64,000 nucleotides of DNA from Zootoca vivipara (taxonomy: Eukaryota), in contig NC_083277.1 of assembly GCF_963506605.1 (NCBI RefSeq), positions 4,588,001 to 4,652,000 on the forward strand, given 5' to 3'. Of this stretch, positions 2,606 to 52,410 are shown piece after piece. Within the stretch, counting starts at the first letter, position 1. Each line of letters begins with the position of its first letter. The notes beneath the pieces are model-generated. The model saw only the letters and a program-made list of their open reading frames with translations. It had not been told where the DNA came from and searched no databases. A program made the position numbers and the translations under genes.

Positions 2606-2870
2606 GTAGTTTTGTGGAATTGGAATGTAACTGCTGAGTAACAAATGTAGCTTCTTGTATGGGAAAAAAAAGAATAGAATATTATTACCTTTTTTTAAAA
2701 AAAAGTTTCCCTCACAGGGGAGTTGCTTGGTCGTTTTGGTGGTCCTTCATTGAACTTTCGTTTTGGTGGTCCTTCATTGAACTTTCCCATCTCTACAATA
2801 TCCTCATTCATCTACCTAAATGACAATTCAAGATAAATCACAATCATCATGCCCAGCGATGGGCATTTTC

Positions 2871-4489: not shown

Positions 4490-5170
<681 letters not shown>

Positions 5171-6060
5171 AGCTTACAAAGATACAAATTAATACATTGC
5201 TCCACTGAGTTCTCAGGTTCCATTTTCTGCCAAAATAGACCACTCGGTTTTCTAGCAATGAGTCACCATTAAGCCCAGGGTTTTCCAAACTTGGTTCTCC
5301 AGCTGTTTATGGACTACAATTCCCATCATCCCTAGCTAGCAGGACCAGTAGTCAGGAATGATTGGAACTGTAGTCCAAAAACAGCTGGAGACCCAGGTCT
5401 CCAAACCTCCAAACACCCCACTATTTGTTACAGACAAACCTCTCCTGTCTAATGCAAACTTCTCTTTATATCGCTTCAAATACAATTCATTCATACGCCA
5501 CATCTTATACATATTAAACACATATATTTAACACCGTACATCAGCCAGTATAATTGATCGTGAAACTTATTAAACTTCTAAATGCAAAACTACATGATCA
5601 GATTAGCTCTTATTTTAAGAAGATGGGAGTTAGCAAATTGATTGAAGTGCGGATTCTGACTAACATCAGGAAGAACTTTCTGACAATAAGAGCTTTTCAA
5701 CAGGGGAACAAACTCCTTTGGTGGGTTGTGGACTCCCCTTCATTGCTTAAATCTTCCATTGAGATTTTAGCATTGCAGCACGTTGGACTAGATGTCCCTT
5801 GGGGCCCTTCCCATTATATGATTTTATGGCTCTATCTATGTGATAAGAGTGAAATGTGAGTGAAAATTGTTCCACATTCCATATATTTAAAATGTTTCTC
5901 CTATGTGAATTCGCTGATGTATATGAACATTCCACTTTCACTGAAGCTCTTTCCACACTCCATGCATTTAAATGGTTTCTTCCAGATGTAAATTTGTTGA
6001 TGTGAAGGTGTGATTACTAGCTGAACCACTTTCCACACTGCACACATTTAAATGCTTTTT

Positions 6061-7712
6061 TTATCCTGTGTGAGTTTGTTGATGTTTTCTAAGTGTTCCT
6101 CTTTGACGGAAGCGCTTCCCACACTCCATACATTTAAATGGTTTCTCCCCTGTATGAATTTGTAGATGTTTTGCATGGCTTCCACTGTTAGCGGACATCT
6201 TCCCACACTCCATACATTTAAATGGTTTCTCCCCTGTGTGGGACCGTAGATGAATATTAAGACTTCCCCTCTCACTGAAGCACTTTCCACACTCTGTGCA
6301 TTTAAAGGGTTTCTCCCCTGTGTGAATTCGTAGATGTTTTTTAAGGCTTCCACTTTGACTGAAGCGCTTTCCACACTCCATACATTTAAATGGTTTTTCT
6401 CCTGTGTGAATTTGTAGATGTTTTTTAAGGTTTTCACATCGATTGAAGCAGTTTCCGCACTCCATACATTTAAACGGTTTTTCTCCTGTGTGAATTCGTA
6501 AATGTTTTGCATGGCTTCCACTGTCAGCGGACATCTTCCCACACTCCATACATTCAAATGGTTTCTCCCCTGTGTGGGACCGTAGATGAATATTAAGACT
6601 TCCCCTCTCACTGAAGCACTTTCCACACTCCGTGCATTTAAAGGGTTTCTCCCCTGTGTGGATTCGTAGATGTTTTTTAAGGTTGCAACTTTGATTGAAG
6701 CAGTTTCCACACTCCATACATTTAAACGGTTTTTCTCCTGTGTGAATCCGCTGATGTGTTCTATGGTTTCGACTTTCTGTGAAAGTCTTCCCACACTCCA
6801 TACATTTAAATGGTTTCTCCCCTGTGTGAATTCGTAAATGTTTTGCATGGCTTCCACTATCCGTGAAAGTCTTCCCACACTCCATACATTTAAATGGCTT
6901 CTCCCCTGTGTGAGTTCTCTGGTGTGTAGTAAGGTAATGCTTCCACCTGAAACACTTCCCACACTCCATACATTCATATGGTTTCTCCCCTGTGTGAGTT
7001 CGCTGGTGTAAAGTAAGGTATTGTTTCCACTTGAAACACTTTCCACACTCCATACATTCATATGGTTTCTCCCCTGTGTGAGTTTGCTGGTGTATTTTAA
7101 GGTAATGTTTCCACTTGAAACACTTTCTGCACTCCATACACTCAAATAGCTTCTTCCCTGTGTGAGTTCGCTGGTGTATAGCAAGGTTCTGATTCCATTT
7201 GAAAGACTTTCCGCACTCCATACATTTGAATGGCTTCTCCCCTGTGTGAATTCTTTGATGCGAACTAAGGGACGCATGATCAATGAAGCTCTTTCCGCAC
7301 TCCAAACATTTAAAAGGTTTCTCCCCTGTGTGAATTTGTAGATGTTTCCTAAAGTTTCCACTTTGACTGAAGCTCTTTCCGCACTCCAAACATTTAAAAG
7401 GTTTCTCCCCTGTGTGAGTGAGTTGATGAACAATAAGACTTCCCCTCACACTGAAGCATTTTCCACACTCTATGCATTTAAATGGTTTTTCTCCTGTGTG
7501 AATCCGCTGATGTGTTCTATGGCTTCCAGAATCAGCAAATGTCTTTCCACACTCCATACACTGAAATGGTTTCTCCCCTGTGTGAGTTCGCCAATGTTTT
7601 GTAAGGTGTTCTTTCCGGCTGAACGACTTTCCACATTTTGTACATTTAAATGGTTTCTTCAATAAAATTCCAGGTGACTTCTTGGAACTCTGACTATTGT
7701 TTCCATCACATA
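6061..7712 (-). CDS. Tandem C2H2 zinc-finger protein, finger exon (19 fingers)
   Basis: Open ORF with 19 C-x2-C-x12-H-x3-H fingers and TGEKP linkers; phase-1 acceptor ttttctttcctccccAAG. The TAA at 6061-6063 is followed by decayed fingers to ~5860. Confidence 0.9.
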
Positions 7713-8674
7713 CTTGGGGAGGAAAGAAAATCCTGTTAGGCTTCCAAGGAAGAGGAAGAAGTAACAAAACACACATCTGGTGCAAATAACAACTCTTATT
7801 TCAATATCTCTTCTGTTCTCCCTTTTCATGTTCCAATTTTTTAGGAATACACCAAAAACAATGTAAATATATATAGTAATGCCAAGTGTTACAATCTGGG
7901 CAGCAAATGAAAACTTTCCTATTTTCCCTGTCCTTTGCCTAATTAAATCATCTCTGTCTTGTGTGTGTGGGTGTACTGTTTCGGTTGTTACAATGTTATG
8001 TATTTTTCTATTTTCTGTTATGCTTAGATGAAGGGTGGTATATGAACAATTCTATGTACACTTGGAAGAGACCCCAAGGGTCCTCTTGTCAAAACTTCTG
8101 CAATGCAGCAATCTCGAATCTGCATCTAACCTCTGCTTAAAAGCCCCCAAAGGAGGAGAGGCCACCACTTTCAGAGGGTGTCTGTTCTACTGTTTAGCTG
8201 GATTCACATTTCTTGTAATCTGAATCCATTGGATCAGCTCCTACCCTCCAGAGATGAAGATAACCAGCTTGCTCCATCTTCACGTGACAGCACTTTAGAT
8301 AGATATATGAAGATGGCATATCTCTTCCCAATCTCCTTTTACCCAAGCTACACAAACCCAGCTTCCTCAGCTATTCCTCATAAGGCTTGGTTTCCAGTCC
8401 CTTGATCATGTTAAGCTTGTGGTCTACTAAGGTCTTGAGACATGAACTACTGGCAAGCCAGGTTTTCTGTTTTTTATATTGTAATCTGTGCAGCGATGCT
8501 TAGATGAAGGTTAGTATATGAGAAATTCTATGGAAACTTGGAAGAGACTCCACAGGCTCTCTTGTGCAATCCCCTGCAGTGGAAATAGCACCTAAAACTC
8601 AAAAGCCTTGGAAAAGGATTTCCTCTTCACCATCCATCTATCTGTGTCCCTGTCTCCACTCCCCTGGAACTCAC

Positions 8675-8815
8675 CAGATATCTCTGAGGGCCCTGGGAAA
8701 AAATGCTCAGAGGTTTTGGGGAGGGATGCAGGAGGCAGTCTAATAAGGTCAACTGTCCATCTTCCTCCTTCCATCCTTGCTCGGTTTGCAGGTTCAGCCG
8801 CTTTCATCCTTCCTT
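8675..8815 (-). CDS. Duplicate N-terminal exon (MEGGRWTVDLIRLPP...SETS) with its 5' end replaced by an L1 3' fragment
   Basis: Paralog of 9563-9726; ATG at 8774; phase-1 donor G/GTGAGT; the original acceptor is missing. Confidence 0.55.
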
Positions 8816-9262
8816 TTTAAAAAGTTTTTATTAAACAAATTTAAAACAATGCATTGTCTATCACATTGTCAATTACATTTCCCCCCTTTTGTCCCCTCCC
8901 CTCCCTTCATCCCCCTTCCCTCAACTCCCCCCCCTCAACTCCCCCCCCCCCGTTTTATTCTCACAAGGTTTCCTCTGCATGTTATCAAATTGTACATATT
9001 TTCACCTTATCTAATTGTGGGTGTTAATTCAAAACCTCCTAAGGAGTCCAGTTCGTTTTGTTGTCTTTTTAAGTAATGGGTTAAAAAAAATCCCATTCTT
9101 CTTTAGAATCCCTAACAAAAATGCTTCTGGTTTTTTAACAAATGTTCTTTTAAACATTTTTTTCAGCTCATTGTATATCATCTCCCAATTTTTGTAAAAC
9201 TTCTCTACATTCCCACCACATATGGTAAAAAGTTTCCTCCTTTTCCCCAGTTCTCAAATTGT
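8816..9262 (-). mobile_element. L1 LINE 3' fragment
   Basis: Minus strand encodes FYHMWWEC (L1 ORF2 CCHC region), followed by a G-rich 3'UTR and aataaa; paralogous to 48480-49010 and 49470-50965. Confidence 0.7.
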
Positions 9263-9562
9263 ATGTTGTGTCCTACAACTTGCGCCCATTTGATCATGTT
9301 AAGCTTGTGGTCTACTAAGGCCCTGAGTCATGTACTACGGGCAAGCCAGGTTTTCTGTTTTTATATTGTAATATGTGCAGTGATGCTTAGATGAAGAAAT
9401 TATATGAGAAATTCTATGTAAACTTGGAAGAGACCCCGCGGGCTCTCTTGCGCAATCCCCTGCAGTAGAAATTGCACCTAAACCTCAAAAGGTTTTCCTC
9501 TTCACCATCCATCTATTGATCCATTTATGGTATGTCCCCATCTCCACTCCCCTGGAACTCAC

Positions 9563-9726
9563 CAGATGTCTCTGAGGGCCCTGGCAGAAAATGCTCAGAG
9601 GTTTTGGGGAGGGATGCAGGAGGCAGTCTGATAAGGTCAACTGTCCATCTTCCTCCTGCCATCCTTGCTAGGTTTGTAGGTTCAGTCGCTTTGGTCCTTC
9701 CTGAGGAGCTCAGAAGCTGCAGGTTC
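9563..9726 (-). CDS. N-terminal exon of the 19-finger ZNF gene (ATG at 9662: MAGGRWTVDLIRLPPASLPKTSEHFLPGPSETS)
   Basis: Polypyrimidine acceptor cttcttccttcccAG; donor G/GTGAGT in phase 1, matching the phase-1 acceptor of the finger exon. Confidence 0.7.
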
Positions 9727-9997
9727 CTGGGAAGGAAGAAGAAGCAAAGGGAGCCTCAGAGGCCCTGCAGGGATTCTCCTGCCCAAAACATTCTGGAGCC
9801 CCTAGAGAAGTTCAAATGGGGTAACCCTTCCAACAAGGCCAATTTTTAAAGGTTTTTTTGGTGATACCAATTCAATCTGTCCTCTCCCTGCCAGGGCTTA
9901 CTTATGAGTAAATCTGCACAGGGCTGCTTTCTGATACCCAGAAACATGCACCAGGTGAGAAGACCGCTCCCCTCCCTCCCTCCAGCCAGGACTTTCT

Positions 9998-10317
9998 CTT
10001 TTTTCTTTTCTTTTTAAGGTTAAAGTTCTTTAATCTTTAAATGCGCATCAATTACACCTCTTTTATTTTGACTTCCAGTTTACCTCTCTGTAGTTTGTAG
10101 TCAAAATAAAAGAGGTGTAATTGATGCGCATTTAAAGATTTTTGTCCAATATTTCATGTGTGGTTTTTTTGTGTGTTCTTTGTTTTGTTTTGTTTTTCTG
10201 CATTTTTTTCTGTAAAAGAAATATGTGGGTGAAGAACGTTTGTGTTTGTAATTATGTTGTTTGTTAATGTTTTTTAACAAGAAAATTAATAAAAACCTAT
10301 TATTATTTTTTAAAAAA
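9998..10317. mobile_element. Short retroposon-like insertion with an internal inversion (42-bp perfect inverted repeat)
   Basis: TSD-like gactttct at 9990-9997 and 10318-10325; absent at the paralogous site ~28277; T-rich left end and aataaa/A-rich right end. Confidence 0.6.
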
Positions 10318-11099
10318 GACTTTCTTGACATTTCTGCTAACTTTGGGGAGGAGGGTTCCCTTCCAGCCCCCACCCAACCATTTCTCCTTCTCTTCCCACA
10401 ACCCCCTGGAACTCAGCACACCACTCCCTGCCTCAAGTAATGATGGTGATGATCCAGCCTCTTTTAAACTATTTTGTAGAGCTCAAAGTTTAAACAAGTT
10501 GTGGCGTCTTGGGAGGGAGGGAAGCCCCAGACCCCTACAGAGACTGACCCAGGTGGACCTTTGCTCTAATTCGGTGTCATGCAGCATCCTACCTTGGGAG
10601 CCCCCAGTTCCTGAGGGAGAAGCAGTTTCCAAGGAGGAGGGGGGAGAAAGCAATTCGGACCCCCCCCTTATGGATGTGACCTTAAGGAGACTCCTGGGCA
10701 GGAGGGAGAAACCAAGGCAGCCCCTATGGAGATTTCCTCGTCTAAGATAGAGCCCTTTCTCTCAAGCCCCGCCCCATATAACTGATCATATGACACAGTA
10801 CATATATCTATATCTATCTATCCACACACCACACACACACACACACCAGCCGCCTCAAGTGTTTTATTGTGGTGGCCAAAGCCCTCACGGGCTCCATGGA
10901 TCTGTCTTCTACGTTCCTCCCCCCCAGAACCAGAGAACTGGAGCTGGAAGGGAAACCGAAGGGTCAGATTCTAACCCCCCCCCCCCCCGCAATGCAGGGG
11001 TCGCAGGAACAGCATCTGCCAAAGATGGATGCCCACCCTCTTTCCCCCCTTGGAGTCCCCTATTCTCAAGGGGCATCCACTTCCGAGCCCCCCAAACAG

Positions 11100-12120
11100 C
11101 CCGCTCAACCCCGGGGGTCATGGGTGGGGGCTGCTGGGACCTCGGAGGTCTTGGGTCCCATGGCTTCCCTCCCCCCCCAACCCAGGGGATCCTCCCATTC
11201 ATCTCTCAGCCCCCCAATCGCCTACTCTGCACCCCGCGTCGCCCCAGAGACTCCCCTTCGCCTAAAGGACTCACCGCCTCAGACAAGCTGAAAGAGACCA
11301 CACGAGGTGGCGGGACCGGAAGAGGGGGCTTTCCCAGGCCGCTCTAGGCAACCGGACTCTCTCGCTCCCCTTAACCCTTACGTGTCCTTGCCGCTCGGGT
11401 ATTCCTGCTCAGGCTGAACCTGCGCAAGACACCGGGAGGGATCCGGATCCCGCCAGATTCAGGACAGGACTGGGCAACGCTCGTCTAGGCTCCCTCGCTG
11501 GGAAAGGGGCATATACAGGGGCCAGCTCCTAGGGGCCCGGGGCCCTTGGGGGGCAATTGCATATTGGAGGGGCGATAGGTGGGATGGTTCAGTGGGTACA
11601 GCATGAGGCTCTTCATCTCAGGGTTGCCGGTTAGAGACCCATGTTGGGCAAAAGAGGGGGGTTGGACTAGATTTGGGGGGGGCGGACAGGGCCAGGCTAC
11701 AAGACGAGTGGGCTTACAAGGACAGAACCGAGGAACGGTACAGTTGGAAGGTGATCTCCGAGGGTCATCCAGACCAACCCGCTGCGATGCTGGAATCGCC
11801 ACGGAAGCATCCACGAGAGACGGCCTCCCGCTGCCAGTCTGCACCATCCTGGTCCACCGATGTTGCCATGCGTGGCCCCCTTTCAAAGCAAGAGGTTCTC
11901 TCTCTCTCCCTGGGGAGAGCGGGTGGGATGGAGGTAGTCTATGCAACTCTGTGGGACGAAAGGGAATATTCTCCCCTCCCCACCCCACAAACTCGCCTCC
12001 GCCAGCCTCCAAACATGGCTGTAGTCAGGGGGCATCTGCCAACCCTGCCCTGCAATCAAGTAAATAAATAAAAGGACTTCACTAACTGACAGATCATGTT
12101 GCAGATAGCTCGGTTCTTGC
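11100..12120 (-). promoter_or_regulatory. GC-rich promoter / non-coding first-exon module (copy 1), donor at ~11270-11275
   Basis: CpG-rich; ETS-like cttccggt; minus-strand donor CG/GTGAGT; lies upstream of ZNF exons. Copies at 20930-21720 (inverted) and 29230-30170. Confidence 0.55.
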
Positions 12121-13438: not shown

Positions 13439-14943
13439 TCAATGGACAGTGTTACCAGTGTGAATTATCTGGTGCTTTCTATAACTAGCAATGTAAGTAA
13501 AACATTTCCCACACACGGTGCATTTATATGGCTTCTCCCCCGTGTGGGCTCTCTGGTGGACGACCAAGGTAGACTTGTCAGCATAACATTTCCCACACTC
13601 AGGGCACTTATGATTTCTCTGCCCTGTATGGATTTTCCGATGTTTCACGAGGTGTGAGTAGCATTGAAAACATTCTCCACACTCGGTGCATTTATAGGGT
13701 TTCTCTCCTTTGTGGACAATCTGGTGGATCACCAATGTAGAGTTGGCAACAAAACACTTCCCACAGTCCATACACTCGTAAGGTTTCTCTCCAGTATGGA
13801 CTTGCTGGTGTTGCCTGAGGGAAGATCGGTTGGCAAACCATTTCCCACATGCTGTGCATTTATAGGGCTTCTCTCCAGTGTGGATTTTATTGTGTTCCAC
13901 AGCGGCTGAGCGTTGAGCAAAACTTTTCCCACATTCCATGCATTTGTATGGTTTCTCTCCTGTGTGGACTCTCTGATGTTTCATCAACTCACCATTTTCA
14001 GTAAAGCCCTTCCCACAGTCTATACATTTGTGAGGTTTCTCTCCCATGTGGACCCTCCGGTGGTGAGACACGAGGTGAGTGTTTTGAGAAAAACATTTAC
14101 CGCACTCTAGGCACTTGTAAGGTTTCTCCCCAGTGTGGACTTTCTGGTGGCGCAGGAGATGAAATTGGTCGGCAAACCGTTTCCCACACGAGGTGCACTC
14201 ATAAGGTTTCTCTCCAGTGTGGGATCTCTGATGCCTCACAAGGTGAACTTTACGAGAAAAACATTTGCCACACTCCATGCACTTGTAAGGTTTCTCCCCA
14301 GTATGGTCTTTCTGGTGTAGCCTGAGGGAAGATTGGATGGCAAACCATTTCCCACATGCTGTGCATTCATAGGGCTTCTCTCCAGTGTGGGATCTCTGGT
14401 GGATCACAAGGTGAGCTTTTAGAGAAAAACATTTGCCACACTCCATGCATTTATAAGGTTTCTCCCCAGTGTGGAATCTCTGGTGCATCACAAGGTGAGC
14501 TTTTAGAGAAAAACATTTGCCACACTCCCCACATCCATAAGGTTTCTCCCCAGTGTGGGATCTCTGGTGGATCACAAAGTAAGATTTGTGAGAAAAACAT
14601 TTGCCACACTCCCCACATGTATAAGGTTTCTCCCCAGTGTGAGATCTCTGATGACTCACAAGGTTACTTTTTTGGGAAAAATATTTGCCACACTCCCTGC
14701 ATTCATAGGGTTTCTCCCCAGTGTGGAATCTCTGGTGGATCCTAAGGTTTTCTGAGCAGGTAAAAGTCTTCTCGCACTCGGGACATTTGTAGGCCTCTTC
14801 TCCCTTGTGGATCCTCTTTTGTCTCACTAGTTCACACTGTAGAGCAAACTGTTTCTCACATTGCAGCGGCTGATCAAGACCCGGTTTCCCAGTCAAACAC
14901 TTCCCAGAAGAACTACAAATGGTCTTTCGCCCGAAGGCATTTC
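13439..14943 (-). CDS. Tandem C2H2 zinc-finger protein, finger exon (16 fingers plus a degenerate one)
   Basis: Open ORF; phase-1 acceptor ttcccatttgtcccAG; TGA at 13439-13441. A different subfamily from the other ZNFs in the window. Confidence 0.9.
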
Positions 14944-15277
14944 CTGGGACAAATGGGAAACAGGAAAATGAGACCGTGAACTTTGGAAACAATGAATATT
15001 TGTGTCGCTCATCTGTGGAACTCAATGCTGCACAAAGAGAAGAAAGGGTGTGTGTATGCAAGGGGCTGGAATCAGCTGACTTGCCCAACCCCTAGTTCTT
15101 TGAACCTTTAAGAGGGGAGCTTTAAGAGCTACAGCCAAAAGAAGTGAGAAGTATAAAACACTGTATTTTAAGGAGCTCCCATGTACTAATGTTATTGGCT
15201 TTTTTCCAGCCAGAATCCAGTTGCAGAACATTTAAGGTGGGCGCCATTGCCACTCTAATAATAATAAAAAACAATAA

Positions 15278-23484: not shown

Positions 23485-24100
23485 CACGTGATGGAAACAA
23501 TAGTCAGAATTCCAAGAAGTCACCTGGAATTTTATTGAAGAAACCATATGAATGTATGAAATGTGGAAAGTCGTTCAGCCGGAAAGAAAACCTTACTACA
23601 CACCAGCGAACTCTCACAGGGGAGAAACCATTTCAGTGTATGGAGTGTGGAAAGACATTTGCTGATTCTGGAAGCCATAGAACACATCAGCGGATTCACA
23701 CAGGAGAAAAACCATTTAAATGTGTGGAGTGCGGAAAGTGCTTCAGTCAAAGTGGAAACCTTAGTTCACATCAAATAATTCACACAGGGGAGAAGCCATT
23801 CAAATCTATGGAGTGCGGAAAGTCTTTCAGGTGGAAACATTACCTTACTACACACCAGCGAACTCACATACGGGAGAAGCCATTTAAATGTATGGAGTGT
23901 GGGAAGACTTTCACAGATAGTGGAAGCCATGCAAAACATTTACGAATTCATACAGGGGAGAAACCATTTAAATGTATGGAGTGTGGGAAGACTTTCACAG
24001 ATAGTGGAAGCCATGTAAAACATTTACGAATTCACACAGGAGATAAACCATTTAAATGTATGGAGTGTGGAAGTTGCTTCAATCAAAGTTGCAACCTTAA
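23485..24100 (+). pseudogene. Truncated C2H2 ZNF (7 finger units, one with C>S); N-terminal exon deleted
   Basis: Same acceptor as the other copies. The array breaks mid-finger (NQSCNLK) at ~24100. The upstream exon is cut a few nt after its acceptor at ~22460 and fused to an L2 fragment. Confidence 0.75.
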
Positions 24101-24499
24101 GTCAGGTAGTTGTTTATCTCTCTGACCTCTAAATTAGTCATTTAAAACTCCACTATATATACCTGGGCTGGAGAGTTTGTGTGGGTGCATCTGTAAGCCA
24201 TAAAATACATCTGTTTCTTCCATGACTTAAATTAAAATTTCAATATGTATTTTTCTTTTTTTAAAAAAATCCCACTTAGAAACCAAAAACCTTAAGAACT
24301 TCAGCAACCTTCATTCCACCCCTAAGAAGATTATGTTAGGACCCTCATGCCAATAATTTTATATAAAGAACTGTTGGGGGGGGATGCAGAAACTAATGAA
24401 GCCACAGCAAATAGGAGTTTAAAAATAGAAATTTGCTGCTGCCAACATTTGTACTGAAGTTGTAGCTATTTCCCTTCCCAGCACAAAGCAAAGTTTAGA

Positions 24500-26878: not shown

Positions 26879-27946
26879 TTATCCTGTGTGAGTTTGTTGA
26901 TGTTTTCTAAGTGTTCCTCTTCGACTGAAGCTCTTCCCACACTCAATACATTCAAATGGTTTCTCCCCTGTGTGAGACCGTAAATGAATATTAAGACTTC
27001 CCCTCTGACTGAAGCACTTTCCACACACTGTGCATTTAAAGGGTTTCTCCCCTGTGTGAATTTGTAGATGTTTTGCATGGGTTCCACTGTCAGCGGACGT
27101 CTTCCCACACTCCATACATTTAAATGGTTTCTCCCCTGTGTGAGTCTGGTGATGTCTTGTAAGATTTCTACCTTCACTGAAACCTTTCCCACACTCCATA
27201 CATCTATATGGTTTCTCCTCTGTGTGAATTCGGTGATGTCTTGTAAGTGACTGACTTTTAGTGTAGCTCTTTCCACACTCCATACATTTAAATGGTTTCT
27301 CCCCTGTGTGAGTTCTCTGATGGAAAGTAAGGCTTTTCTTCTCTGTGAAGCTCTTTCCACACTCCATACATTCATATGGTTTCTCCCCTGTGTGAATTCG
27401 CTGGTGTAAAGTAAGGCTTTTCTTCCCTGTGAAGCTCTTTCCACACTCCATACATTTAAATGGTTTCTCCCCTGTGTGAATTCGTAAATGTGTTGCATGG
27501 GTTCCACGGTCAGCGGAAGTCTTCCCACACACCATACATTTAAATGGCTTCTCCCCTGTGTGAGTTTGCTGGTGTCTAGTAAGGTGCTTATTCCTCCTGA
27601 AACACTTTCCGCACTCCATACATTTGAATGGCTTCTCTCCTGTATGAATTAGTAGATGTTTTTTAAGGTTTCCACTTTCACGGAAGCTCTTTCCGCACTC
27701 CATACATTTAAATGGTTTCTCCCCTGTGTGAATTCGTAAATGTTTTGCATGGCTTCCACTGTCAGCGGAAGTCTTCCCACACTCCATACACTGAAATGGT
27801 TTTTCCCCTGTGTGAGTTCGCTGGTGCCTAGTAAGGTAATGCTTCCACATGAAACACTTTCCACACTCCATACATTGAAATGGCTTCTCCCCTGTGTGAG
27901 TTTGCTTGTGAGAAGTAAACTTTGTTTTCCATCTTCCTCCTTCCAT
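26879..27946 (-). CDS. C2H2 ZNF (12 intact fingers) made by an in-frame deletion fusing the N-terminal exon to the finger array
   Basis: ORF starts MEGGRW|[16 protein letters not shown]; exon acceptor intact at 28011-28012; same TAA as the 6061 gene. Confidence 0.8.
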   Translation of the reverse strand: MEGGRWKTKFTSHKQTHTGEKPFQCMECGKCFMWKHYLTRHQRTHTGEKPFQCMECGKTSADSGSHAKHLRIHTGEKPFKCMECGKSFRESGNLKKHLLIHTGEKPFKCMECGKCFRRNKHLTRHQQTHTGEKPFKCMVCGKTSADRGTHATHLRIHTGEKPFKCMECGKSFTGKKSLTLHQRIHTGEKPYECMECGKSFTEKKSLTFHQRTHTGEKPFKCMECGKSYTKSQSLTRHHRIHTEEKPYRCMECGKGFSEGRNLTRHHQTHTGEKPFKCMECGKTSADSGTHAKHLQIHTGEKPFKCTVCGKCFSQRGSLNIHLRSHTGEKPFECIECGKSFSRRGTLRKHQQTHTG

Positions 27947-37265: not shown

Positions 37266-37791
37266 TGCCTGAAGCTCTTTCCACACTCTGTACATCTAAA
37301 GGGTTTCTCCCGTGTGAATTCGTAGATGTACAGTAAGTTCTCCATTTTCTCTGAAGCCCTTTCCACACACAATACATTTAAATGGTTTCTCCCCTGTGTG
37401 ACTTTGGTGATGTCTTGTAAGTTTTCCACCTTCACTGAAACCTTTCCCACACTCCATACATCTACATGGTTTCTCCTCTGTGTGAGTTCGGTGGTGTCTT
37501 GTAAGTGACTGACTTTTAGTGTAGCTCATTCCACATTTAAAAGGTTTCTCCCCTGTGTGAGTTCTCTGATGTAAAGTAAGGGTTGTCTTCCGTGTGAAGC
37601 TCTTTCCACACTCCATACATTTAAATGGTTTCTCCCCTGTGTGAATTTGTAGATGTTTTTTAAGGGAGCAACTTCGATTGAAGCAACTTCCACACTCCAT
37701 ACATTTAAACGGTTTTTCTCCTGTGTGAATTCGTAGATGTGTTGAATAGTGTCCACTTTCTGTAAAATTCTTCCCACACTCCATACATTTA

Positions 37792-37953
<162 letters not shown>

Positions 37954-39008
37954 TCATATGGTTTCTCCCGTGTGAATTCGTAAATGTGTTGCATGGGTTC
38001 CACGGTCAGCGGATGTCTTCCCACACACCATACATTTAAATGGCTTCTCCCCAGTGTGAATTCGTAGGTGTTTTTTAAGGTTTCCACTTTCACGGAAACA
38101 TTTAAATGGTTTTCCTCCTGTGTGAATCCGTTGATGTTTTCTATGGGTTCCAGAATCAGCAAATGTCTTTCCACACTCCATACACTGAAATGGCTTCTCC
38201 CCTGTGTGAGTTTGCTTCTGAGAAGTAAACTTTGTTTTCTGGATGAAGCACTTTCCGAACACCATGCATTTAAATGGTTTCTTCAATGAAATTCCAGGTG
38301 ACTTCTTGGAATTCTGACTATTTTTTCCATCATCTGCTTGGGGAGGAAAGAAAATCCTGTTAGGCTTCCAAGGAAGAGGAAGAAGTAACAAAACACACAT
38401 CTGGTGCAAATAGCACCTCTTATTTCAATATCTCTTACGTTCTCCCTTTTCATGTTCCAATTTTTTAGGAATACACCGAAAATAATGTCAAAATATAGTA
38501 ATGCCAAGTGTTACAATCTCGGCAGCAAATTAAAACTTTCCTCTTTTCCCTGGCCTTTGCCTAATTATATCATCTCTGTCTCTTTAAATTGTGTGTGTAC
38601 TGTTTTGGTTGTTACGATGTTATGTATTTTTCTTTTTTAATATTGTAAACCAGGCAGTGATGCTTATATGAAGGGTGGCATATGAACAATTCTATGTAGA
38701 CTTGGAAAAGACCCCAAGGTTCCTCTTCTCCAAACTTCTGCAATGCAGCAATCTCAACTCTGCATCCAACCTCTGTTTAAAAGCCCCCAAAGGAGAAGAG
38801 TCTACCACTATTAGAGGATGTCTGTTCTACTGTCTAGCTGGATTCACATTTTTTATCATTTGAATCCATTGGATCAGTTCCTACCCTCCAGTGATAAAGA
38901 TAACAAGCTTGCTCTCTTCCCAGTCTCCTTTTATCCAGGCTAATCAAACCCAGCTTCCTCAACTATTCCTCATAAGGCTTGGTTTCCAGTCCCTTGATTA
39001 TGTTAAGC

Positions 39009-40099: not shown

Positions 40100-40666
40100 A
40101 TGCAGGTAACCTTGGAAGGGACAGCACATAGAAGAATCCCAACCAAGCCTATGAAGAGGCGTGTAGTGGTGATTGGGGATTCCCTACTGAGGGGTACAGA
40201 AGCAGTGATCTGTGGGCCTGACAAGATGTCTCGAGAGGTGTGCTGTCTACCTGGGGCCAAGATCAAAGATGTAACAGAACGGCTGCAAGGAATCATAAAA
40301 CCCACCGACAAATACCCCTTCCTTTTGGTGCATGTGGGAACCAATGACACTGCAAGCCATAGCTTACAGAAGATCAAAAATGATTATGAGGCTCTGGGCA
40401 GGAAGTTGAAGCAATTAGATGCACAAATTGTCATCTCTTCTGTCCTCCCAGTTGAACGACATGGCCCAGCGAGAGAGGGAAAAATAGGGGAAGTGAACAA
40501 CTGGCTTCGCAAATGGTGCAAACAGGAACGGTTTGGATTCCTAGATCACGGTCTGCAGTTTCTTGAAGATGGACTTCTGGCAAGTGATGGACTGCACCTC
40601 ACAAAAGTTGGGAGGAATGTTTTTGCCACAAAACTCAAAAACCTCATCAGGAGGGCTTTAAACTGA
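40100..40666 (+). CDS. CR1 ORF1 C-terminal SGNH/GDSL esterase-like domain (5'-truncated)
   Basis: [24 protein letters not shown] and DGLH motifs. Confidence 0.9.
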
Positions 40667-40671
40667 CTTAT

Positions 40672-43593
40672 GTGGGGGAGGGAGACAGTGGTCCTGAAGG
40701 TAGGAGTCTATCAAATGCTGAAGATGATCATCCAAATGTCAAGGACCAAATGGAGCAAGCAGCATGCAGACCTAGTGGTGGGACGAAAATATCCTTAAAT
40801 AAGAGACATGGGGGAATGATCAACGGTCTTCAATGTCTGTATACTAATGCACAGAGCATGGGAAATAAACAAGATGAACTTGAGCTCTTGGTACAGCAAA
40901 CTAAATATGACATAATAGGCATCACTGAAACCTGGTGGGATGAGTCTCATGACTGGAATGTAGTAATAGAGGGATACAATCTATTTAAGAGAAATAGACC
41001 AAACAGGAAAGGAGGAGGAGTAGCTTTATATGTTAGGGATATGTATACCTGTGAAGAGATCCAGGATTTAAAACTTCAAAGCCAAATTGAGAGTATCTGG
41101 GTCAAAATTAAGGGAGAGAAAAACAACAGTGATCTCATTGTGGGAGTTTACTATAGATCCCCAAGCCAAACTGAGGACACAGATGATGCCTTCCTGGAAC
41201 AGATGGCCAAGCATTCCAAAGGAAGTGAGATAGTAGTAATGGGGGATTTCAACTATCCTGATATTTGTTGGATGTCAAACTCAGCCAAGAGCATAAGGTC
41301 GAACAGATTCCTCACTGGCCTTGCAGACAACTTCATTGTCCAGAAAGTGGGAGAAGCAACAAGAGGATCAGCCATTTTAGATCTGGTCCTAACCAATAGT
41401 GATGACTTGGTTAGTGGGGTAGAAGTGGCAGGATCATTAGGTGGGAGTGACCATGCTCTTCTGGAGTTTATAATCCAGCGGAAAGGAGCAACCAAGCATA
41501 CTAAGGTCCAAATTCTAGACTTTAAGAAAGCCGACTTCAGAAAACTTAGGGAAACGCTGGGTGAAATCCCATGGACAGTAATACTAAAAGGGAAGGGAGT
41601 TCATGATGGTTGGGAGTTTGTTAAAAGGGAGATATTAAAAGCACAACTTCAGGCAATACCAATGAGACGGAAACATGGAAGGTGCCTAAAGAAGCCAGGC
41701 TGGCTATCTAAAGAACTTTTGACTGAGTTAAGATTTAAAAGGGATATGTACAAAAAATGGAAAAGGGGGGAAATCTCCAGAGAGGAATTCAAACATATAG
41801 CCAGCACGTGTAGAGACAAAGTCAGAAAAGCTAAAGCACAGAATGAACTCAGGCTCGCCAGAGAGGTTAAAAGCAACAAAAAGGGCTTTTATGGGTATGT
41901 CCGTAGCAAAAGGAAAAACAAGGAAACAGTGGGGTCACTCAGAGGAGAAGATGGTGAAATGCAAACAGGGGACAGAGAAAGGGCAGAACTCCTCAATGCC
42001 TTCTTTGCCTCAGTCTTCTCCAAGAAAGAAAACAACGCCCGACCTGAAGAATATGGAGCAGATGATTCAGCAGGGGAAACACAGCCCAGAATAAGTAAGG
42101 AGGTAGTACAAGAATACTTGGCTAGTTTAGATGTATTCAAGTCTCCAGGGCCAGATGAACTACATCCAAGAGTATTAAAAGAACTGGCAGAGGTGATTTC
42201 AGAACCACTGGCAATAATCTTTGAAAATTCCTGGAGAACAGGCAAAGTTCCAGCAGACTGGAGGAGGGCAAATGTTGTCCCTATTTTCAAAAAGGGGAAA
42301 AGAGAGGACCCAAACAATTACCGCCCAGTCAGCCTGACATCAATACCAGGAAAGATTCTAGAGCAGATCATTAAGCAAACAGTCTGTGAGCACCTAGAAA
42401 GAAACTCTGTGATCACTAAAAGTCAGCATGGGTTCCTGAAAAATAAGTCATGTCAGACTAATCTGATCTCATTTTTTGACAGAATTACAAGCCTGGTAGA
42501 TGAAGGGAACGCTGTGGATGTAGCCTATCTTGATTTCAGCAAGGCCTTTGACAAGGTGCCCCATGATATTCTTGTAAAGAAGCTGGTAAAATGTGGGCTA
42601 GACAATGCTACCATTCAGTGGATTTGTAGCTGGATTACTGACCGAACCCAAAGGGTGCTCATCAATGGCTCCTCCTCATCCTGGAGAGTAGTGACTAGTG
42701 GGGTGCCACAGGGTTCTGTCTTGGGCCCAGTCTTGTTCAACATCTTTATCAATGACTTGGATGATGGGCTTGAGGGAATCCTGAGCAAGTTTGCAGATGA
42801 CACCAAGTTGGGAGGGGTGGCTAACACCCCAGAGGACAGGATCACACTTCAGAATGACCTTAACAGATTAGACAACTGGGCCAAAGCAAACAAGATGAAT
42901 TTTAACAAGGAGAAATGTAAAGTACTACACTTGGGCAAAAAAAATGAAAGGCACAAATACAGGATGGGAGACACCTGGCTTGAGAGCAGTACATGTGAAA
43001 AGGATCTAGGAGTTTTGGTTGACCACAAACTTGACATGAGTCAGCAGTGTGATGCAGCAGCTAAAAAAGCCAATGCAATTCTGGGCTGCATCAATAGGAG
43101 TATAGCATCTAGATCAAGGGAAGTAATAGTACCACTGTATTCTGCTCTGGTCAGACCTCACCTGGAGTATTGTGTCCAGTTCTGGGCACCACAGTTCAAG
43201 AAGGATACTGATAAGCTGGAACGTGTCCAGAAGAGGGCAACCAAAATGGTCAAAGGCCTGGAAACGATGCCTTATGAGGAACGGCTTAGGGAGCTGGGTA
43301 TGTTTAGCCTGGAGAAGAGAAGGTTAAGGGGTGATATGATAACCATGTTCAAATATATAAAAGGATGTCATATAAAGGAGGGAGAAAGGTTGTTTTCTGC
43401 TGCTCCAGAGAAGCGGACACGGAGCAACGGATTCAAACTACAAGAAAGAAAATTCCACCTAAACATTAGGAAGAACTTCCTGACAGTAAGAGCTGTTCGG
43501 CAGTGGAATTTGCTGCCAAGGAGTGTGGTGGAGTCTCCTTCTTTGGAGGTCTTTAAGCAGAGGCTTGACAGCCATCTGTCAGGAATGCTTTGA
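40672..43593 (+). CDS. CR1 ORF2: apurinic-like endonuclease plus reverse transcriptase (973 aa, uninterrupted; true start uncertain)
   Basis: YTNAQS, ITETWW, MGDFN and SDH (endonuclease); [19 protein letters not shown] and FADD (RT). Confidence 0.97.
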
Positions 43594-46032: not shown

Positions 46033-47018
46033 AGTGCAAGGCGAGATATCTTCAGTGCGGGGCTTGCCTGTCCCCACCATATTTTATTCAAGTTTGCACC
46101 CCTGGGGAGCAGAGAGAGAGACGTGTCATTTGGTAGAAAAGGCTCCATCTTGGGCACTGGCGGGGAAATCTCTGGAGGGGCCGCCTTGGCTTCTCCCTCC
46201 TGCCCAGGAATCTCCTTAAAGTCACTTCTATAAATGGGGGAAGGGGTCCCAATTCCTTTCTCCCTCTTCCTACTTAGAAACTGCTCCTCCCTTGGGGACT
46301 GGGGGCTCCCAAGGTAGGATGCTGCATGACCCCGAATTAGACCATTGGTTCACCTGGGTCACTATTGCTGGCTGGCTGGCCACCCTGAGGCCAGGAGGCT
46401 GGACTAGGTGCTCCATTTGGCCTGATCCAGCAGGACTCTGGTGATGTTCTTAAGAGGAAAGGAGTGTTTTTTAATGGTGGCGTGGGGAAGATCCTCTTTC
46501 GGGCATGACTCTGCAGGGGTTCAGGTGGAAGTCACCCTTCTTTTCCTGTAGGAGGAGTTGCTAGGGTGCCACTTAGGGAGGGAAATCTCTGGGGGGGGTC
46601 TGGGGCTGCCTCCCCCCCCCCAGGACATCACAACTTGTTTAGACTTTGGGCTCTGCATAATAGTTTAAAAGAGGCTGGATCTGCAATCATCATCACTATC
46701 CGAGGCTGGGAGAGGTGCTGATTTCCAAGGGACTGTGGGTGGAGAAGGAGAAATGGATGGATGGGGGCTGGAGGGGAACCCTCCCCCCAAGCAGAAAAGT
46801 CAAGAAAGCCCTGGATGGAGGAAGGGAGGGGAACAGTCATCTCCAAAGTCTCTCACCTGGTGCATGTTTTGGGTGTCCAAAGAGGAGGAATATGCAGAGC
46901 AAACACTGTGCAGATTTACTCACAAGTAAACCCTGGCGGGGAGGGCACAGATTGAATTGGTATCACACAAAAAGACTTTAAAAATGGGGCTCCTTTTTGG
47001 AAGGGGGTACCCCATTTG

Positions 47019-47258
47019 GAGAGTCTGTGTGGTGTAGTGGTTAAGTGCGGTAGACTCGTAATCTGGGGAACCGGGTTCGCGTCTCCGCTCCTCCACAGGC
47101 AGCTGCTGGGTGACCTTGGGCTAGTCCCACTTCTCTGAAGTCTCTCAGCCTCACTCACCTCACAGAGTGTCTGTTGTGGGGGAGGAAGGGAAAGGAGAAT
47201 GTTAGCCACTTTGAGACTCCTTAGGGTAGTGATAAAGCGGGATATCAAATCCAAATTC
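47019..47258 (+). mobile_element. tRNA-headed SINE
   Basis: A box tggtgtagtgg and B box gggttcgcgtc; absent from paralogous introns (e.g. ~22370). Confidence 0.75.
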
Positions 47259-47380
47259 TTCTCTTTCTCCTTCTCTTGCTTCTCCTTCCCCTTCCCCTTC
47301 TCTAGAGGCTGCAGAATGTTTTGGGCAGGAGAATCCCTGAATGGCCTCTGAGGCTCCCTTTCCTTCTTCTTCCCTCCCAG

Positions 47381-47543
47381 GAACCTGCAGCTTCTGAGCT
47401 CCACAGGAAGGACCAAAGAGGCTGAACCTGAAAACCTAGCAAGGATGGAAGGAGGAAGATGGACAGTTGACCTTATCAGACTGCCTCCTGCATCCTCCCC
47501 AAGAACCTCTGGGCATTTTCTCCCAGGGCCCTCAGAGACATCT
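47381..47543 (+). CDS. N-terminal exon of the 13-finger ZNF gene (ATG at 47445, MEGGRWTVDLIRLPP...)
   Basis: Acceptor ttcttccctcccAG; phase-1 donor G/GTGAGT; further 5'-altered tandem copies at ~49014-49152 and ~50969-51107. Confidence 0.7.
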
Positions 47544-49677
47544 GGTGAGTTCCAGGGGAATGGAGATAGGGACATAAATGGATCAATAGATGGATGGCGA
47601 AGAAGAAAACCTTTTCCCAGGCTTTTGAGTTTTAGGTGCTATTTCCACTGCAGGGGATTGCACAAGAGAGCCTGTGGGGTCTCTTCCAAGTTTGCATAGA
47701 ATTTCTCATATACGACCCTTCATCTAAGCATCACTGCACAGATTACAATATAAAAAACAGAAAACCTGGCTTGCCAGTAGTTCATGTCTCAAGACCTTAG
47801 TAGACCACAAGCTTAACATGATCAAGGGACTGGAAACCAAGCCTTATGAGGAATAGCTGAGGAAGCTGGGTTTGCTTAGCCTGGATAAAAGGAGACTGGG
47901 AAGAGATATGCCATCTTCAGATATCTATCTAAAGTGCTGTCACGTGAAGATGGAGCAAGCTGGTTATCTTCATCTCTGGAGGGTAGGAGCTGATCCAATG
48001 GATTCAAATTACAAGAAATGTGAATCCAGCTAAACAGTAGAACAGGCACCCTCTGAAAGTGGTGGACTCTCCTCCTTTGGGGGCTTTTAAGCAGAGGTTA
48101 GATGCTTAAGTCGAGATTGCTGCATTGCAGAAATTTTGACAAGAGGACCCTCGGGGTCTCTTCCAAGTGTACATAGAATTGTTCATATACCACCCTTCAT
48201 CTAAGCATCACAGAAAATAGAAAAATACATAACATTCTAACAACCGAAACAGTACACCCACCCACACAATTTAAAGAGACAGAGATGAGCCCACAGGAAA
48301 GTTTACATAGAATTTCTCATAGAATTTCTTCATCTAAACATCGCTGCACAGATTACAATATAAAAACAGAAAACAGGGCCTTAGTAGACCACAAGCTTAA
48401 CATGATGAAATGAGCGCAAGTTGTAGGACACAACATACAATTTGAGAACTGGGGAAAATTGTGGAAAATAAATTTAAAATGTACTGATTGTTCTTTGCTG
48501 AAGGAAAATTATATGAAAATGATGTATAGATGGTATATTACACCTGCTAAAGTGGGAATCGTGTATAAAACTGGATCAAATAAATCAAACATGTGGTGGG
48601 AATGTAGAGAAGTTTAAAAAAATTGGGAGATGATATATAATGAACTGAAAAAAAATGTTTAAAAGAACATTTGTTAAAAAACCAGAAGCATTTTGTTAGG
48701 GATTCTAAAGAAGAATGGGATTTGTTTATTTTTACCAATTACTTAAAAAGACAACAAAATGAACTGGACTCCTTAGGAGGTTTTGAATAAACACCCACAA
48801 TTTATTAGTAGAATATAGGGTAGATAAGGTGAAAATATGTACAATTTGATAATATGCAGAGAAAACCGTGTGAGAATAAAAGGGGGGGAGTTGAGGGAAG
48901 TCTTGGGAAGGGGGGAGGAAGGGAGGGGAGGGGATAAAAGGGGGGGAAATGTAATTGACAATGTGATAGATAATGTATTCTTTTAAATTTGTTTAATAAA
49001 AACTTTTAAAAAAGGAAGGTTGAAAGCGGCTGAACCTGCAAACCGAGCAAGGATGGAAGGAGGAAGATGGACAGTTGACCTTATTAGACTGCCTCCTGCA
49101 TCCCTCCCCAAAACCTCTGAGCATTTTTTCCCAGGGCCCTCAGAGACATCTGGTGAGTTCCAGGGGAGTGGAGACAGGGACACAGATAGATGGATGGTGA
49201 AGAGGAAATCCTTTTCCAAGGCTTTTGAGTTTTAGGTGCTCTTTCCACTGCAGGGTATTGCACAAGAGAGCCTGTGGGGTCTCTTCCAAGTTTCCATAGA
49301 ATTTATCATATACTACCTTTCATCTAAGCATCGCTGCACAGCTCACAATATTAAAACAGAAAACCTGGCTTGCTAGTAGTACATGACTCAGGGCCTTAGT
49401 AGACCACAAGCTTAACACGATCAAATGGGCACAAGATGTAGGACACAACATACAATTTGAGGACTGGGGATAATTGTGGAAAGTAAATTTGATTGTTCTC
49501 TCCTGAAGGAAAATTATATGAAAATGATGTAGAGATAGTATATTACACCTGCTAAAGTGGCAAACATGTATAAAACTGGATCAAATAAATGTTGGAAATG
49601 TAAGGAAAAGGAGGGAACTTTTTACCATATGTGGTGGGAATGTAGAGAAGTTTAAAAAATTGGGAGATGATATATAA

Positions 49678-49745
49678 CTAGTGTCGTTCAGCCCGTTTAG
49701 AAAACAGGCGCTAGGGGATATGTGAGAGGAGCAGCGGGGCCGCGG

Positions 49746-49789
<44 letters not shown>

Positions 49790-50406
49790 GCTCGGCTGCG
49801 GGGCGCGCCAGGAACGCAAGTAAACAAACTCGCTATCCCGTCGTGCCCCGCAGCTGAGTGCAGAGAGGGAGGGAAGGCTGCGGCCTCGTCGCTCGTCTCA
49901 TGGGCTCCTCCGTCGAGCGCGCGAGGGGAAGGCACGAGGGGAGGCGGAGTCCGGCGCCTGGGCCTAGCCGCCTCCCTCAGCCATGGTGCGCTTCGTCGCA
50001 GGCTTCGCCTACGATGACGACGGGGAAAGCCTGGCCGCCGGAGCCGCAGCAGCAGGAGCCGGAGCCCGGGGACTGGGAGGCTTCGGCGGGGGTGACCGGC
50101 TGGCCCGTCAGCAGGAGCACCACTACCAGCTCAAACGGGAAGCGACAGGAAGGAGACATCCCGGGGTTTGGAGAAGCGCTTGCTGGACGCACACACGTGC
50201 GCGCTCCCCCCCCCCCCGCCAACGCTCAGTCCAGCCAGGAGCGGCGGTTGGCAGCCGCAGGGAAACGGTAGGTGGGGGGGAGAGTGCACGTGTGTGTGCG
50301 TCCAGTCTCTGCTGTCCAATCCCTGTGTCCCTGGGGCCCATGTGCAGTAACCCAGGGACACACGGGAAAACTGGACGCAGAGACACTTGGACTTTATTAT
50401 ATAGGA
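49678..50406 (-). mobile_element. Non-autonomous Helitron (729 bp) carrying a captured host gene fragment
   Basis: The minus strand starts TCCTATATAATAAA and ends ...ACACTAG. Subterminal hairpin gcccgttt-aga-aaacaggc at 49691-49709. Inserted between A and T with no TSD; empty site gatatataa|tgaactg in the paralog at ~48631-48646. Confidence 0.92.
49983..50132 (+). pseudogene. DGCR6: Captured 5' coding fragment resembling DGCR6 exon 1, preceded by a CpG-island-like 5' region (~49735-49982)
   Basis: Kozak cagccATGG; MVRFVAGFAY...DRLARQQEHHYQL versus the recalled DGCR6 N-terminus MERYAG...ARQQERHYQLL; similarity stops after HYQL. Confidence 0.7.
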
Positions 50407-51260
50407 TGAGCTGAAAAAAATGTTTAAAAGAACATTGTTAAAAAACCAGAAGCATTTTTGTTAGGGATTCTAGGGCAAGACCTGTGAAGGAAATCAAGGA
50501 ACCTATTTATGTAGTATGCTAGAACAGTGCCGAGAGTTTTGTTCGCAAAGGTATGGAAGACTGAGGAAATCCCTATGAAAGAGCAATGGCAAGAAAAATT
50601 GATGAGTTATGAGGAACTGGCAAAGCTGAGATACAAACTGTGAGAGAAGGACAACCATGAGTTTAAAGAAAAATGGGATTTTTAAAAGAAATTACTTAAC
50701 GACATCAAAACAAATAGGACTCCTTAGCAGGTTTTGAATAAACACCCATAATTTATTAGTAGAATATAGGGTAGATAAGGTGAAGATATGTACAATTTGA
50801 TAACATGCAGAGTAAACCGTGTGAGAGAAAAAAGGGGGGGAGTTGAGGGAAGTATTGGGAAGGAGGGACGGAGAGGAGGGGAGGGGATAAAAAGGGGAGG
50901 AAATGTAATTGACAATGTGATAGATAATGTATTATTTTAAAAATTGTTCAATAAAAACTTTTTAAAAAGGAAGGATGAAAGTGGCTGAACCTGCAAACCT
51001 AGCAAGGATGGAAGGAGGGCGATGGACAGTTGACCTTATCAGACTGCCTCCTGCATCCCTCCCCACAACCTCTGAGCATTTTCTCCCAGGGCCCTCAGAG
51101 ACATCTGGTGAGTTCCAGGGGAGTGGCGATGGGGACATAAATGGATCAATAGATGGTGAAGAGGAAAACCTTTTCCCAGGCATTTGAATTGTAGGTGCTA
51201 TTTCCTCTGCAGGACTCCTGGATAGTTGCTGGTCTCCCCTTCTTAGGCAAGGTTCTTGAC

Positions 51261-51392
51261 CAGCCATCCCCAAACTTCGGACCTCCAGATGTTTTGGACC
51301 ACAATTCCTCTCACCCCTGACCACTGGTCCTGCTAGGTATCATGGGAGTTGTAGGGCAAAACATCTGGAGGGCCGCAGTTTGGGGATGCCTG
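51261..51392. mobile_element. hAT-type MITE (same family as 1392-1527)
   Basis: TIRs; 8-bp TSD ttcttgac. Confidence 0.9.
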
Positions 51393-52410
51393 TTCTTGAC
51401 CGTATGGTTGCAGACAAGATCCAGGTGGCCTTTTAGGAAGCTGATTTTCTAGGTCCATTTTAATTGGATTTTGGACCAGTTTTGTCCCAGAAACTGCTTT
51501 GGTTGCCCTGTATGATGACCTCTGTTGGGAAAGAGGCAGCAGAACCGTGACCCTACTAATTCTCCTTGTCCTCTCAGCAACTTTCGATTCCCTCTACCAT
51601 GGTATCCTTCTAGAGCAGCTAGAATAACCAGCTGCACATATATAAGATGGAGGACACCTGGGTTGCCAGTAGTCCAAGTCTCAGGGCCTTAGTAGACCAC
51701 AAGCTTAACATGATCAAGGGATTGGAAACCAAGCCTTATGAGGAATAGCTGAGGAAGCTTGGTTTGCGTAAAAGGAGACTGGGAAAAAGGAGACTGGGAA
51801 GAGATATGCCATCTTCAGATATCTATCTTCACGTGAAGATGGAGCAAGCTGGTTATCTTCATCTCTGGAGGGTAGGAGCTGATCCAATGGATTCAGATTA
51901 CAAGAAATGTGAATCCAGCTAAACAGCAGAACAGACACCCTCTGAAAGTGGTGGACTCTCCTCCTTTGGGGGCTTTTAAGCAGAGGTTAGATGCAGATTC
52001 GAGATTGCTGCATTGCAGAAGTTTGGACAAGAGGACCCTCGGGGTCTCTTCCAAGTGTACATAGAATTGTTCATATACCACCCTTCATCTAAGCATCACA
52101 GAAAATAGAAAAATACATAACATTGTAAAAACCGAAACAGAACCCCCTCCCCTGCAAATTTAAAGAGATGATTTAATTAGGCAGAAGCCTGGGAAAAGAG
52201 GAAAGTTTTAATTTGCTGCCTTAATTGTAACACTTGGCATTATTATAATTTGACATTATTTTCGCTGCATTCCTTAAAAAATGGAATATAAAAAGGAAAA
52301 GGGAGAACGTAAGAGATATTGAAATAAGAGGTGCTATTTGCACCAGATGTGTGTTGTGTTACTTCTTCCTCTTCCTTGGAAGCCTAACAGCATTTTCTTT
52401 CCTCCCCAAG

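Follow-up and report, generated by a model that had tools for sequence, protein, structure and literature searches.

The 64-kb window (the whole stretch of DNA analysed here, which is without any N) contains a 729-bp block, at 49678–50406 on the minus strand, that is very probably a non-autonomous Helitron1-type element with the captured 5′ end of a DGCR6 gene, amplified in trans and now a decaying passenger. The two central claims of an earlier note on this DNA held up. That the block is a complete non-autonomous Helitron follows from its termini, its hairpin, its insertion between A and T and two empty paralogous sites; that it took up a DGCR6-like 5′ end was confirmed by a protein match and an alignment with lacertid orthologs. 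The surroundings are a C2H2 zinc-finger (ZNF) gene cluster, with finger exons at 6061–7785, 13439–15088, 26879–27946 and 37296–38174 on the minus strand and at 23535–24125 and 52338–53567 on the plus strand.

Termini, architecture and insertion site

Read on the minus strand from 50406, the element begins TCCTATATAATAAAG, with the TC start of the Helitron1 type, and the letters of its 5′ end run TCCTATATAA...; at 49678 it ends ...CACTAG, in agreement with the CTRR ending of the same type. A hairpin lies at 49709–49691, with the arms GCCTGTTT and AAACGGGC around the loop TCT (8-bp stem, 3-nt loop), and 13 nt separate it from the 3′ end, within the 10–20 nt before the end that are characteristic of Helitron1-type hairpins. 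All of these signals, which the earlier note had described, could be read directly: the TC start, the CTAG end and the hairpin 13 nt from it. When folded as single-stranded DNA (ssDNA) the hairpin is the centroid structure (z = −2.6), with an equally good fold in 2 of 200 shuffles, and the ssDNA fold of the whole element has a z of −5.7. Each of the 21-nt termini occurs once in the 64-kb window, where 0 occurrences are expected by chance, and none of 13 inverted-repeat pairs connects both ends of the element in the manner of terminal inverted repeats. Neither BLAST of the element nor searches with its 5′ motif found a further copy in the window, and no RepHel open reading frame (ORF) was found in it. 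A pattern search returned a second 3′ end at 935–958, which we rejected: it has no convincing hairpin or Helitron context, and 0.27 such matches are expected by chance.

On the Helitron strand the element opens with a 5′ backbone (left terminal sequence) at 50143–50406, delimited by contig depth and loose ends, which has a TA-rich start and contains nested palindromes at 50183–50305 and 50321–50365 according to an inverted-repeat search. A 10-nt junction (50133–50142), lacking a GT splice donor, joins the common backbone to the end of the DGCR6 homology. The cargo proper, DGCR6 codons 1–50, occupies 49983–50132 on the plus strand, antisense to the Helitron, as defined by protein match, alignment and ORF. 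It is adjoined by a probable DGCR6 5′ UTR at 49928–49982, also plus, whose approximate boundary is drawn from exon-like low depth and RNA reads. Beyond it lies a GC-rich palindromic module at 49797–49927, probably Helitron 3′ backbone judging by its depth and by its arms at 49775–49821 and 49828–49874 (47 nt each, 77% complementary). A repeat search placed a (TC)18.5 microsatellite, (GA)n on the Helitron strand, at 49749–49785, and sequence and fold delimit a 3′ terminal sequence at 49678–49737 on the minus strand that holds the hairpin (49691–49709), the 13-nt spacer and CTAG. The interior had been described as CpG-dense, and rightly so: the CpG observed/expected ratio (o/e) is 0.82 (0.82–0.84) in the element against 0.14–0.25 in the flanks. 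With a GC content of 66%, the Helitron is the largest and top-scoring CpG-island-like block of the 64-kb window.

The flanks read ...CTCA before the element and TTATAT... after it, so that the insertion lies exactly between A and T, with no target site duplication. We joined the flanks after removing the 729 bp and aligned them to paralogous sites in the window. Across the junction they align gap-free to two such sites, one at 48632–48647 on the plus strand (A 48640, T 48641) and the other at 9164–9179 on the minus strand (junction 9170/9171), the latter 95.8% identical to the flanks over 143 bp. The block therefore entered as one piece between A and T, without duplication or deletion. The insertion without duplication and the empty site claimed at ~48631–48646 were both recovered, and the site at 9164–9179 is a second one.

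The Helitron stands 22 bp downstream of, and antisense to, a decayed L1 ORF2 C-terminal cysteine motif region (49539–49655, plus strand), which matches residues 1113–1148 of the solved human L1 ORF2p with an E value of 4e-6. This match identifies the flank as L1; a relation to the LINE ORF2 at 40672–43593 was considered and rejected, the two being unrelated. An apparently intact non-LTR retrotransposon, likewise unrelated to the L1 around the Helitron, is present at 40100–43593 on the plus strand. Its ORF1 (188 aa), which has a GDSL-esterase domain as is typical for LINEs of the CR1/L2 type, is directly followed by an ORF2 of 973 aa with domains for endonuclease and reverse transcriptase.

Blocks of 83–96% identity link 8402–9702 (minus strand) with 47405–49424 and 50407–51400, 40 kb apart in the same ZNF cluster. 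As far as sequence comparison goes, they suggest a segmental duplication of the cluster and not solely independent L1 copies; the copy of the duplicated blocks at 9170 is without the Helitron. An ORF-like repeat occurs three times around the Helitron, at 46916–47575, 48983–49219 and 50962–51324, always on the minus strand, with the motif ...SPLPWNSPDVSEGPGRKC.EVLG.DAGGSLIRSTVHLPPSILARF... and with no Pfam match. It is possibly dispersed in its own right, or it may belong to the duplicated unit.

Identity and limits of the cargo

The cargo ORF, MVRFVAG...ARQQEHHYQL at 49983–50132, matches the ‘protein DGCR6-like’ of Lacerta agilis at 85% identity (45 of 53 aligned residues, 43 of the first 50; E = 4.8e-17). 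The 90% cluster of this protein holds the DGCR6 of Podarcis muralis, P. raffonei, P. lilfordi and Zootoca vivipara. When the 50 cargo residues were aligned with six lacertid DGCR6 proteins, the closest was that of P. raffonei (84% over the aligned part), and the match comprised residues 1–50, ending after ...HYQL. By these 50 residues the DNA comes from a lacertid lizard and stands nearest to Podarcis. A tblastn search of the whole 64-kb window with Podarcis DGCR6 returned residues 1–53 only and no other DGCR6 exon; the fragment therefore lies apart from the parental gene, and its site is not the parental locus. No GT splice donor is present in the letters just past the DGCR6 part, and the ORF continues from the cargo into the backbone, up to 50414, for a total of 143 aa. 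Within these 143 aa we found no Pfam match of any kind; that the DGCR6 domain (PF07324) is not among them is expected for the N-terminal 50 residues alone. Judged by its sequence, the cargo is a DGCR6 fragment, not a gene.

Two other protein matches were set aside. A Pfam match of a 52-aa piece to K_channel_TID is weak (E = 0.042) and attributable to chance. A WD40-repeat protein was the sole match of the 50-aa cargo in 1.8 billion representative proteins; it reflects a chance repeat motif and is uninformative on chimeric proteins.

Where the cargo ends upstream, and how it relates to the border between exon 1 and intron 1, was judged from depth profiles and from the protein alignment. Here the earlier note had gone further and proposed that the element also captured the DGCR6 promoter, a claim that is not supported. 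The DGCR6 homology is shown for 50 codons, the plus-sense RNA reads of the parent gene reach back to ~49930 and no further upstream, and the stretch at 49797–49927 has the high depth of backbone. We read this stretch as Helitron backbone because its depth is ~20 times that of the exon and because it contains a long palindrome. The GC-rich stretch upstream of ~49930 is thus probably not DGCR6 promoter.

Copies of the family, decay and expression

Logan contigs of the public runs X1 and X4, which come from the same organism and from different studies, were placed on 49400–50700 at 85% likeness, and raw reads of the RNA runs X15 and X16 (~6% of each run sampled) were placed on the same interval. 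Perfectly matching flank contigs served as the yardstick of depth, with ~21–26 in X1 and 50–69 in X4. The first ~90 bp of the Helitron (50324–50411) reached summed depths of 80,000–111,000 in X1 and 256,000–381,000 in X4, where summed contig depth is not a copy number and gives an order of magnitude only. At 50407 we observed loose ends in 40 contigs of X1, 52 contigs of X4 and 249 RNA reads, which run off into unrelated flanks (agreement 0.36–0.46). Divergence between the copies sets in no more than 1 nt from the proposed 5′ end at 50406, with the flanking A in common if 50407 is the last aligned letter. The expectation that the termini recur elsewhere is therefore borne out at the 5′ end, and recurrence with unrelated flanks is established for this end only.

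In 9 contigs of X1 and 19 of X4 a second set of loose ends lies before 50143 and marks the boundary between backbone and cargo. These contigs show that other members of the family have 50143–50406 but a different sequence in place of the DGCR6 piece. The exon part of the cargo has a depth of 89–483 in X1 and 421–2,403 in X4, and the probable 5′ UTR stretch at 49928–49982 falls into the same low class (483–535 in X1), while the GC-rich module at 49797–49927 has 1,568–11,629 in X1. At 50119 the cargo is covered by 8 distinct contigs in X1 and 12 in X4, and the junction between module and cargo is spanned by two contigs of single-copy depth, 49849–49948 and 49860–49991, with 3–10 differences. Therefore several other copies of the same composite exist, in keeping with the suggested dispersal of the cargo by the Helitron; contig depth puts their number at perhaps ~10–25. 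The substitutions of the copies are nested (T at 50093 in most copies, T at 49996 in a subset, A at 50119 private), which fits amplification after a single capture.

In nine X1 contigs the sequence past the loose end behind 50183 is the reverse complement of 50148–50183 (agreement 0.93), so other members have the full palindrome, of which this copy has one arm. The letters of this copy at 49895, 49934 and 50119 are found in none of the X1 and X4 contigs listed, and at most 0.64 of the sampled words occur in any one run. The animals of X1 and X4 may lack the copy, or it may be poorly assembled, given its GC content of 66% and strong self-folding. As a Helitron copy it may represent an insertion polymorphism or a sequence poorly recovered by short reads.

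The coding part has five changes at residues that are invariant in six lacertid orthologs (A2V, G5V, G22A, G29R and R46H). This copy differs from the majority of related contigs at 17 or more positions, and among those listed the other allele restores a CpG in 12 of 17. The copy is losing CpGs, and CpG loss is the behaviour of methylated DNA; its CpG o/e of 0.82 indicates, therefore, that long-term germline methylation has not been complete. When combined with a lacertid rate of 2.56e-9 per site per year (PMC12001565), these lower-bound counts suggest an age of a few million years. The element had been called young, which is true only in a relative sense: a paralogous segment of 96% identity lacks the insertion, but the changes at invariant residues and the CpG losses speak of a copy that has already begun to decay.

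Plus-sense RNA reads of X15 cover 50060–50147 at a depth of 15–18. They carry the parental letters, which include those coding G5 and R46, in 27 of 27 cases at 50093, 26 of 26 at 50119 and 4 of 4 at 49996, and they come therefore from DGCR6 itself or from less-changed copies. The diagnostic letters of this copy were seen in no RNA read at these three positions in the ~6% of X15 that was sampled, and X16 has almost no reads over the cargo. We infer that the copy is silent, and it is without sign of function. The Helitron 5′ end (50324–50411) appears in RNA-seq on both strands at a depth of 90–190 (X15), next to unrelated flanks; thus many copies of the family are transcribed within host transcripts. 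A 6-nt insertion, AGCGCA, follows 50348 in 71 of 219 RNA reads and in no DNA contig of X1 or X4.

Origin of the composite and comparison with known Helitrons

In Helitron transposition RepHel nicks at the 5′ TC and peels off one strand as far as the hairpin-CTAG signal, and it then inserts this strand between A and T. In the history that we propose, a member of the very abundant lacertid Helitron family would have taken up, at the DNA level, ~200 bp of the DGCR6 5′ end, probably a short 5′ UTR and the first 50 codons, in reverse orientation. On one side of the piece would stand 264 bp of 5′ backbone and on the other ~250 bp of 3′ backbone, the latter made up of the palindromic module, the TC repeat, the hairpin and CTAG; the piece would travel because it lies between the end signals of the Helitron. 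A RepHel enzyme acting in trans would then have copied the composite to the order of 10–25 places. This copy would have inserted between A and T in the 3′ region of an L1, with a C2H2 zinc-finger exon ~1.9 kb downstream, and would now be a decaying passenger, with no splice donor, a coding part free of constraint and ongoing CpG loss. The high-copy backbone flanks the cargo on both sides, and we therefore favour a capture in which template switching or filler repair brought the piece into a non-autonomous element that already existed.

The composite could also have arisen by end-bypass, or chimeric transposition, in which a Helitron 5′ end together with an unrelated 3′ end or a de novo terminator mobilised the DGCR6 exon 1 that lay between them, with no internal filler capture. 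The 5′ end is indeed ~50–80 times more abundant than the stretch beside the 3′ end (110,961 against 1,314 in X1), an imbalance under which the two ends may derive from different subfamilies, and composites made by end-bypass are documented in bats (PMC4224331). However, backbone-like high-copy sequence is found on both sides of the cargo (50143–50406 and 49797–49927), which also fits insertion into an existing element, and we hold end-bypass to be possible but doubtful. Improbable, in our view, is an origin through RNA, by which a reverse-transcribed 5′ fragment of DGCR6 mRNA would have come to lie in a Helitron copy and been amplified afterwards. The cargo seems to start near ~49930, where the parental RNA reads start, and has no recognisable intron sequence, but neither poly(A) nor a second exon was seen, no target duplication surrounds the cargo, and LINE-mediated retroposition normally retains 3′ ends and not 5′ ends (PMC12001565).

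Another question is whether the fragment has acquired a role. The cargo ORF lies in sense with the finger exon at 52338–53567, 1.9 kb downstream, and the DGCR6 fragment might have been exapted, to serve this ZNF gene, or a new chimeric one, as first exon or alternative promoter. An intact ATG starts the 143-aa ORF, the block has the highest CpG-island score in the window with a CpG o/e still at 0.82–0.84, and bat Helitron cargo is known to have donated promoters and exons (PMC4224331). A regular-expression search found no KRAB-like exon upstream of the ZNF exon. Against exaptation, which we regard as very improbable, stand the missing GT donor after the DGCR6 part, the five substitutions at invariant residues together with ongoing CpG decay, and the RNA reads (two runs, ~6% sampled), all 26–27 of which are parental at the diagnostic positions; moreover, a protein search found no annotated chimeric protein of 79–250 aa. 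It is also conceivable that no transposition took place and that we are looking at an assembly artefact, or at a DGCR6 duplicate that lies by chance beside Helitron-like motifs. The private letters of this copy do occur in no short-read contig listed, with 0.64 of the sampled words in the best run. But the insertion between A and T is exact against two independent empty sites, the termini agree to 1 nt with the divergence point of many other copies, the hairpin is typical of the family, and contigs of other copies span the junction between module and cargo, so that this account is extremely improbable.

A Helitron that carries the DGCR6 5′ end adds a well-documented squamate case to the transduplication of gene 5′ ends by Helitrons, which is documented mainly in maize, bats and Xenopus. 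It is a clean instance of a behaviour that is familiar from the Helitrons of bats, maize and frogs. It is also a warning for annotation, since transposon cargo, and not a gene start, provides the best CpG island and Kozak ATG of this window in a ZNF cluster. Rather speculatively, and with less confidence in it than doubt, we suggest that the abundant lacertid Helitron family repeatedly picks up the CpG-island 5′ ends of housekeeping genes, as is shown here for DGCR6. If this were true, lacertids would offer a natural system in which to study the 5′-end bias of Helitrons, with recent and possibly polymorphic insertions, and a few cargoes might seed promoters or first exons in fast-evolving ZNF clusters. 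The cause of the bias of Helitron capture towards gene 5′ ends has been called an open question (PMC12001565).

In the literature searched we found nothing that links a Helitron with DGCR6 and no description of host-gene cargo in lizard Helitrons. The earlier statement that such a case is undescribed in squamates is thus sound for the host-gene cargo, but not for Helitrons as such, which are known in Anolis (PMC3014272, PMC2997563) and in lacertids (PMC12001565). The Helitron-1, Helitron-2 and N families of Anolis carolinensis were described by Novick et al. (2010, PMC3014272), and HeligloriaB by Thomas et al. (2010, PMC2997563). By their description the Anolis Helitrons resemble ours in being young, abundant and non-autonomous elements of a squamate host; unlike ours, they are reported to have captured SINE and Poseidon fragments only, and not fragments of host genes (PMC3014272).

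Another family to compare is Heli1Xen1, which belongs to the Helitron1 type, has moved by horizontal transfer and is found in Xenopus, Bufo and bichirs as well as in Zootoca, Darevskia and Lacerta, with autonomous copies in lacertid genomes (Mob DNA 2025, PMC12001565). A sequence counts as a member when its identity to the query or consensus and its coverage each reach 80% or more (PMC12001565). Gene capture by Heli1Xen1 was analysed in X. laevis only: of the 19 CDS fragments taken up there, 17 come from the 5′ ends of genes, and most have few copies, while cargo in lizards is not reported (PMC12001565). Heli1Xen1 has the ends TC...CTAG, the left motif TATATAAA and the hairpin CCCGTTA...TAACGGG (PMC12001565). 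Compared at the level of motifs, our element has in common with it the TC...CTAG ends. Its TA-rich 5′ motif (TATATAATAAA here against TATATAAA) and its 3′ hairpin, CCTGTTT...AAACGGG, resemble those of Heli1Xen1 without being identical, the hairpin arms matching at 5 of 7 and 6 of 7 positions.

A close likeness in the kind of cargo is found in bats. Pritham and Feschotte reportedly described Helibat cargoes in vespertilionid bats in 2007, HelibatN3 with NUBPL among them. Bat Helitrons capture promoters, 5′ UTRs and first exons, with a bias towards gene 5′ ends and with some cargo in reverse orientation (Thomas et al. 2014, PMC4224331), and NUBPL cargo in bat Helitrons has been reported as well in PMC2997563. 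Like HelibatN3 with its NUBPL cargo, which in this type comprises the 5′ UTR and the first coding exon, our element is non-autonomous, carries the 5′ end of a conserved single-copy gene and was amplified after the capture (PMC4224331); like HelibatN217.1 with its TMBIM4 cargo, it holds the cargo in reverse orientation (PMC4224331). It differs from Helibat in its lizard host, in its tens of copies as compared with about a thousand, and in a homology to the captured gene that is shown for 50 codons and for no promoter or intron part.
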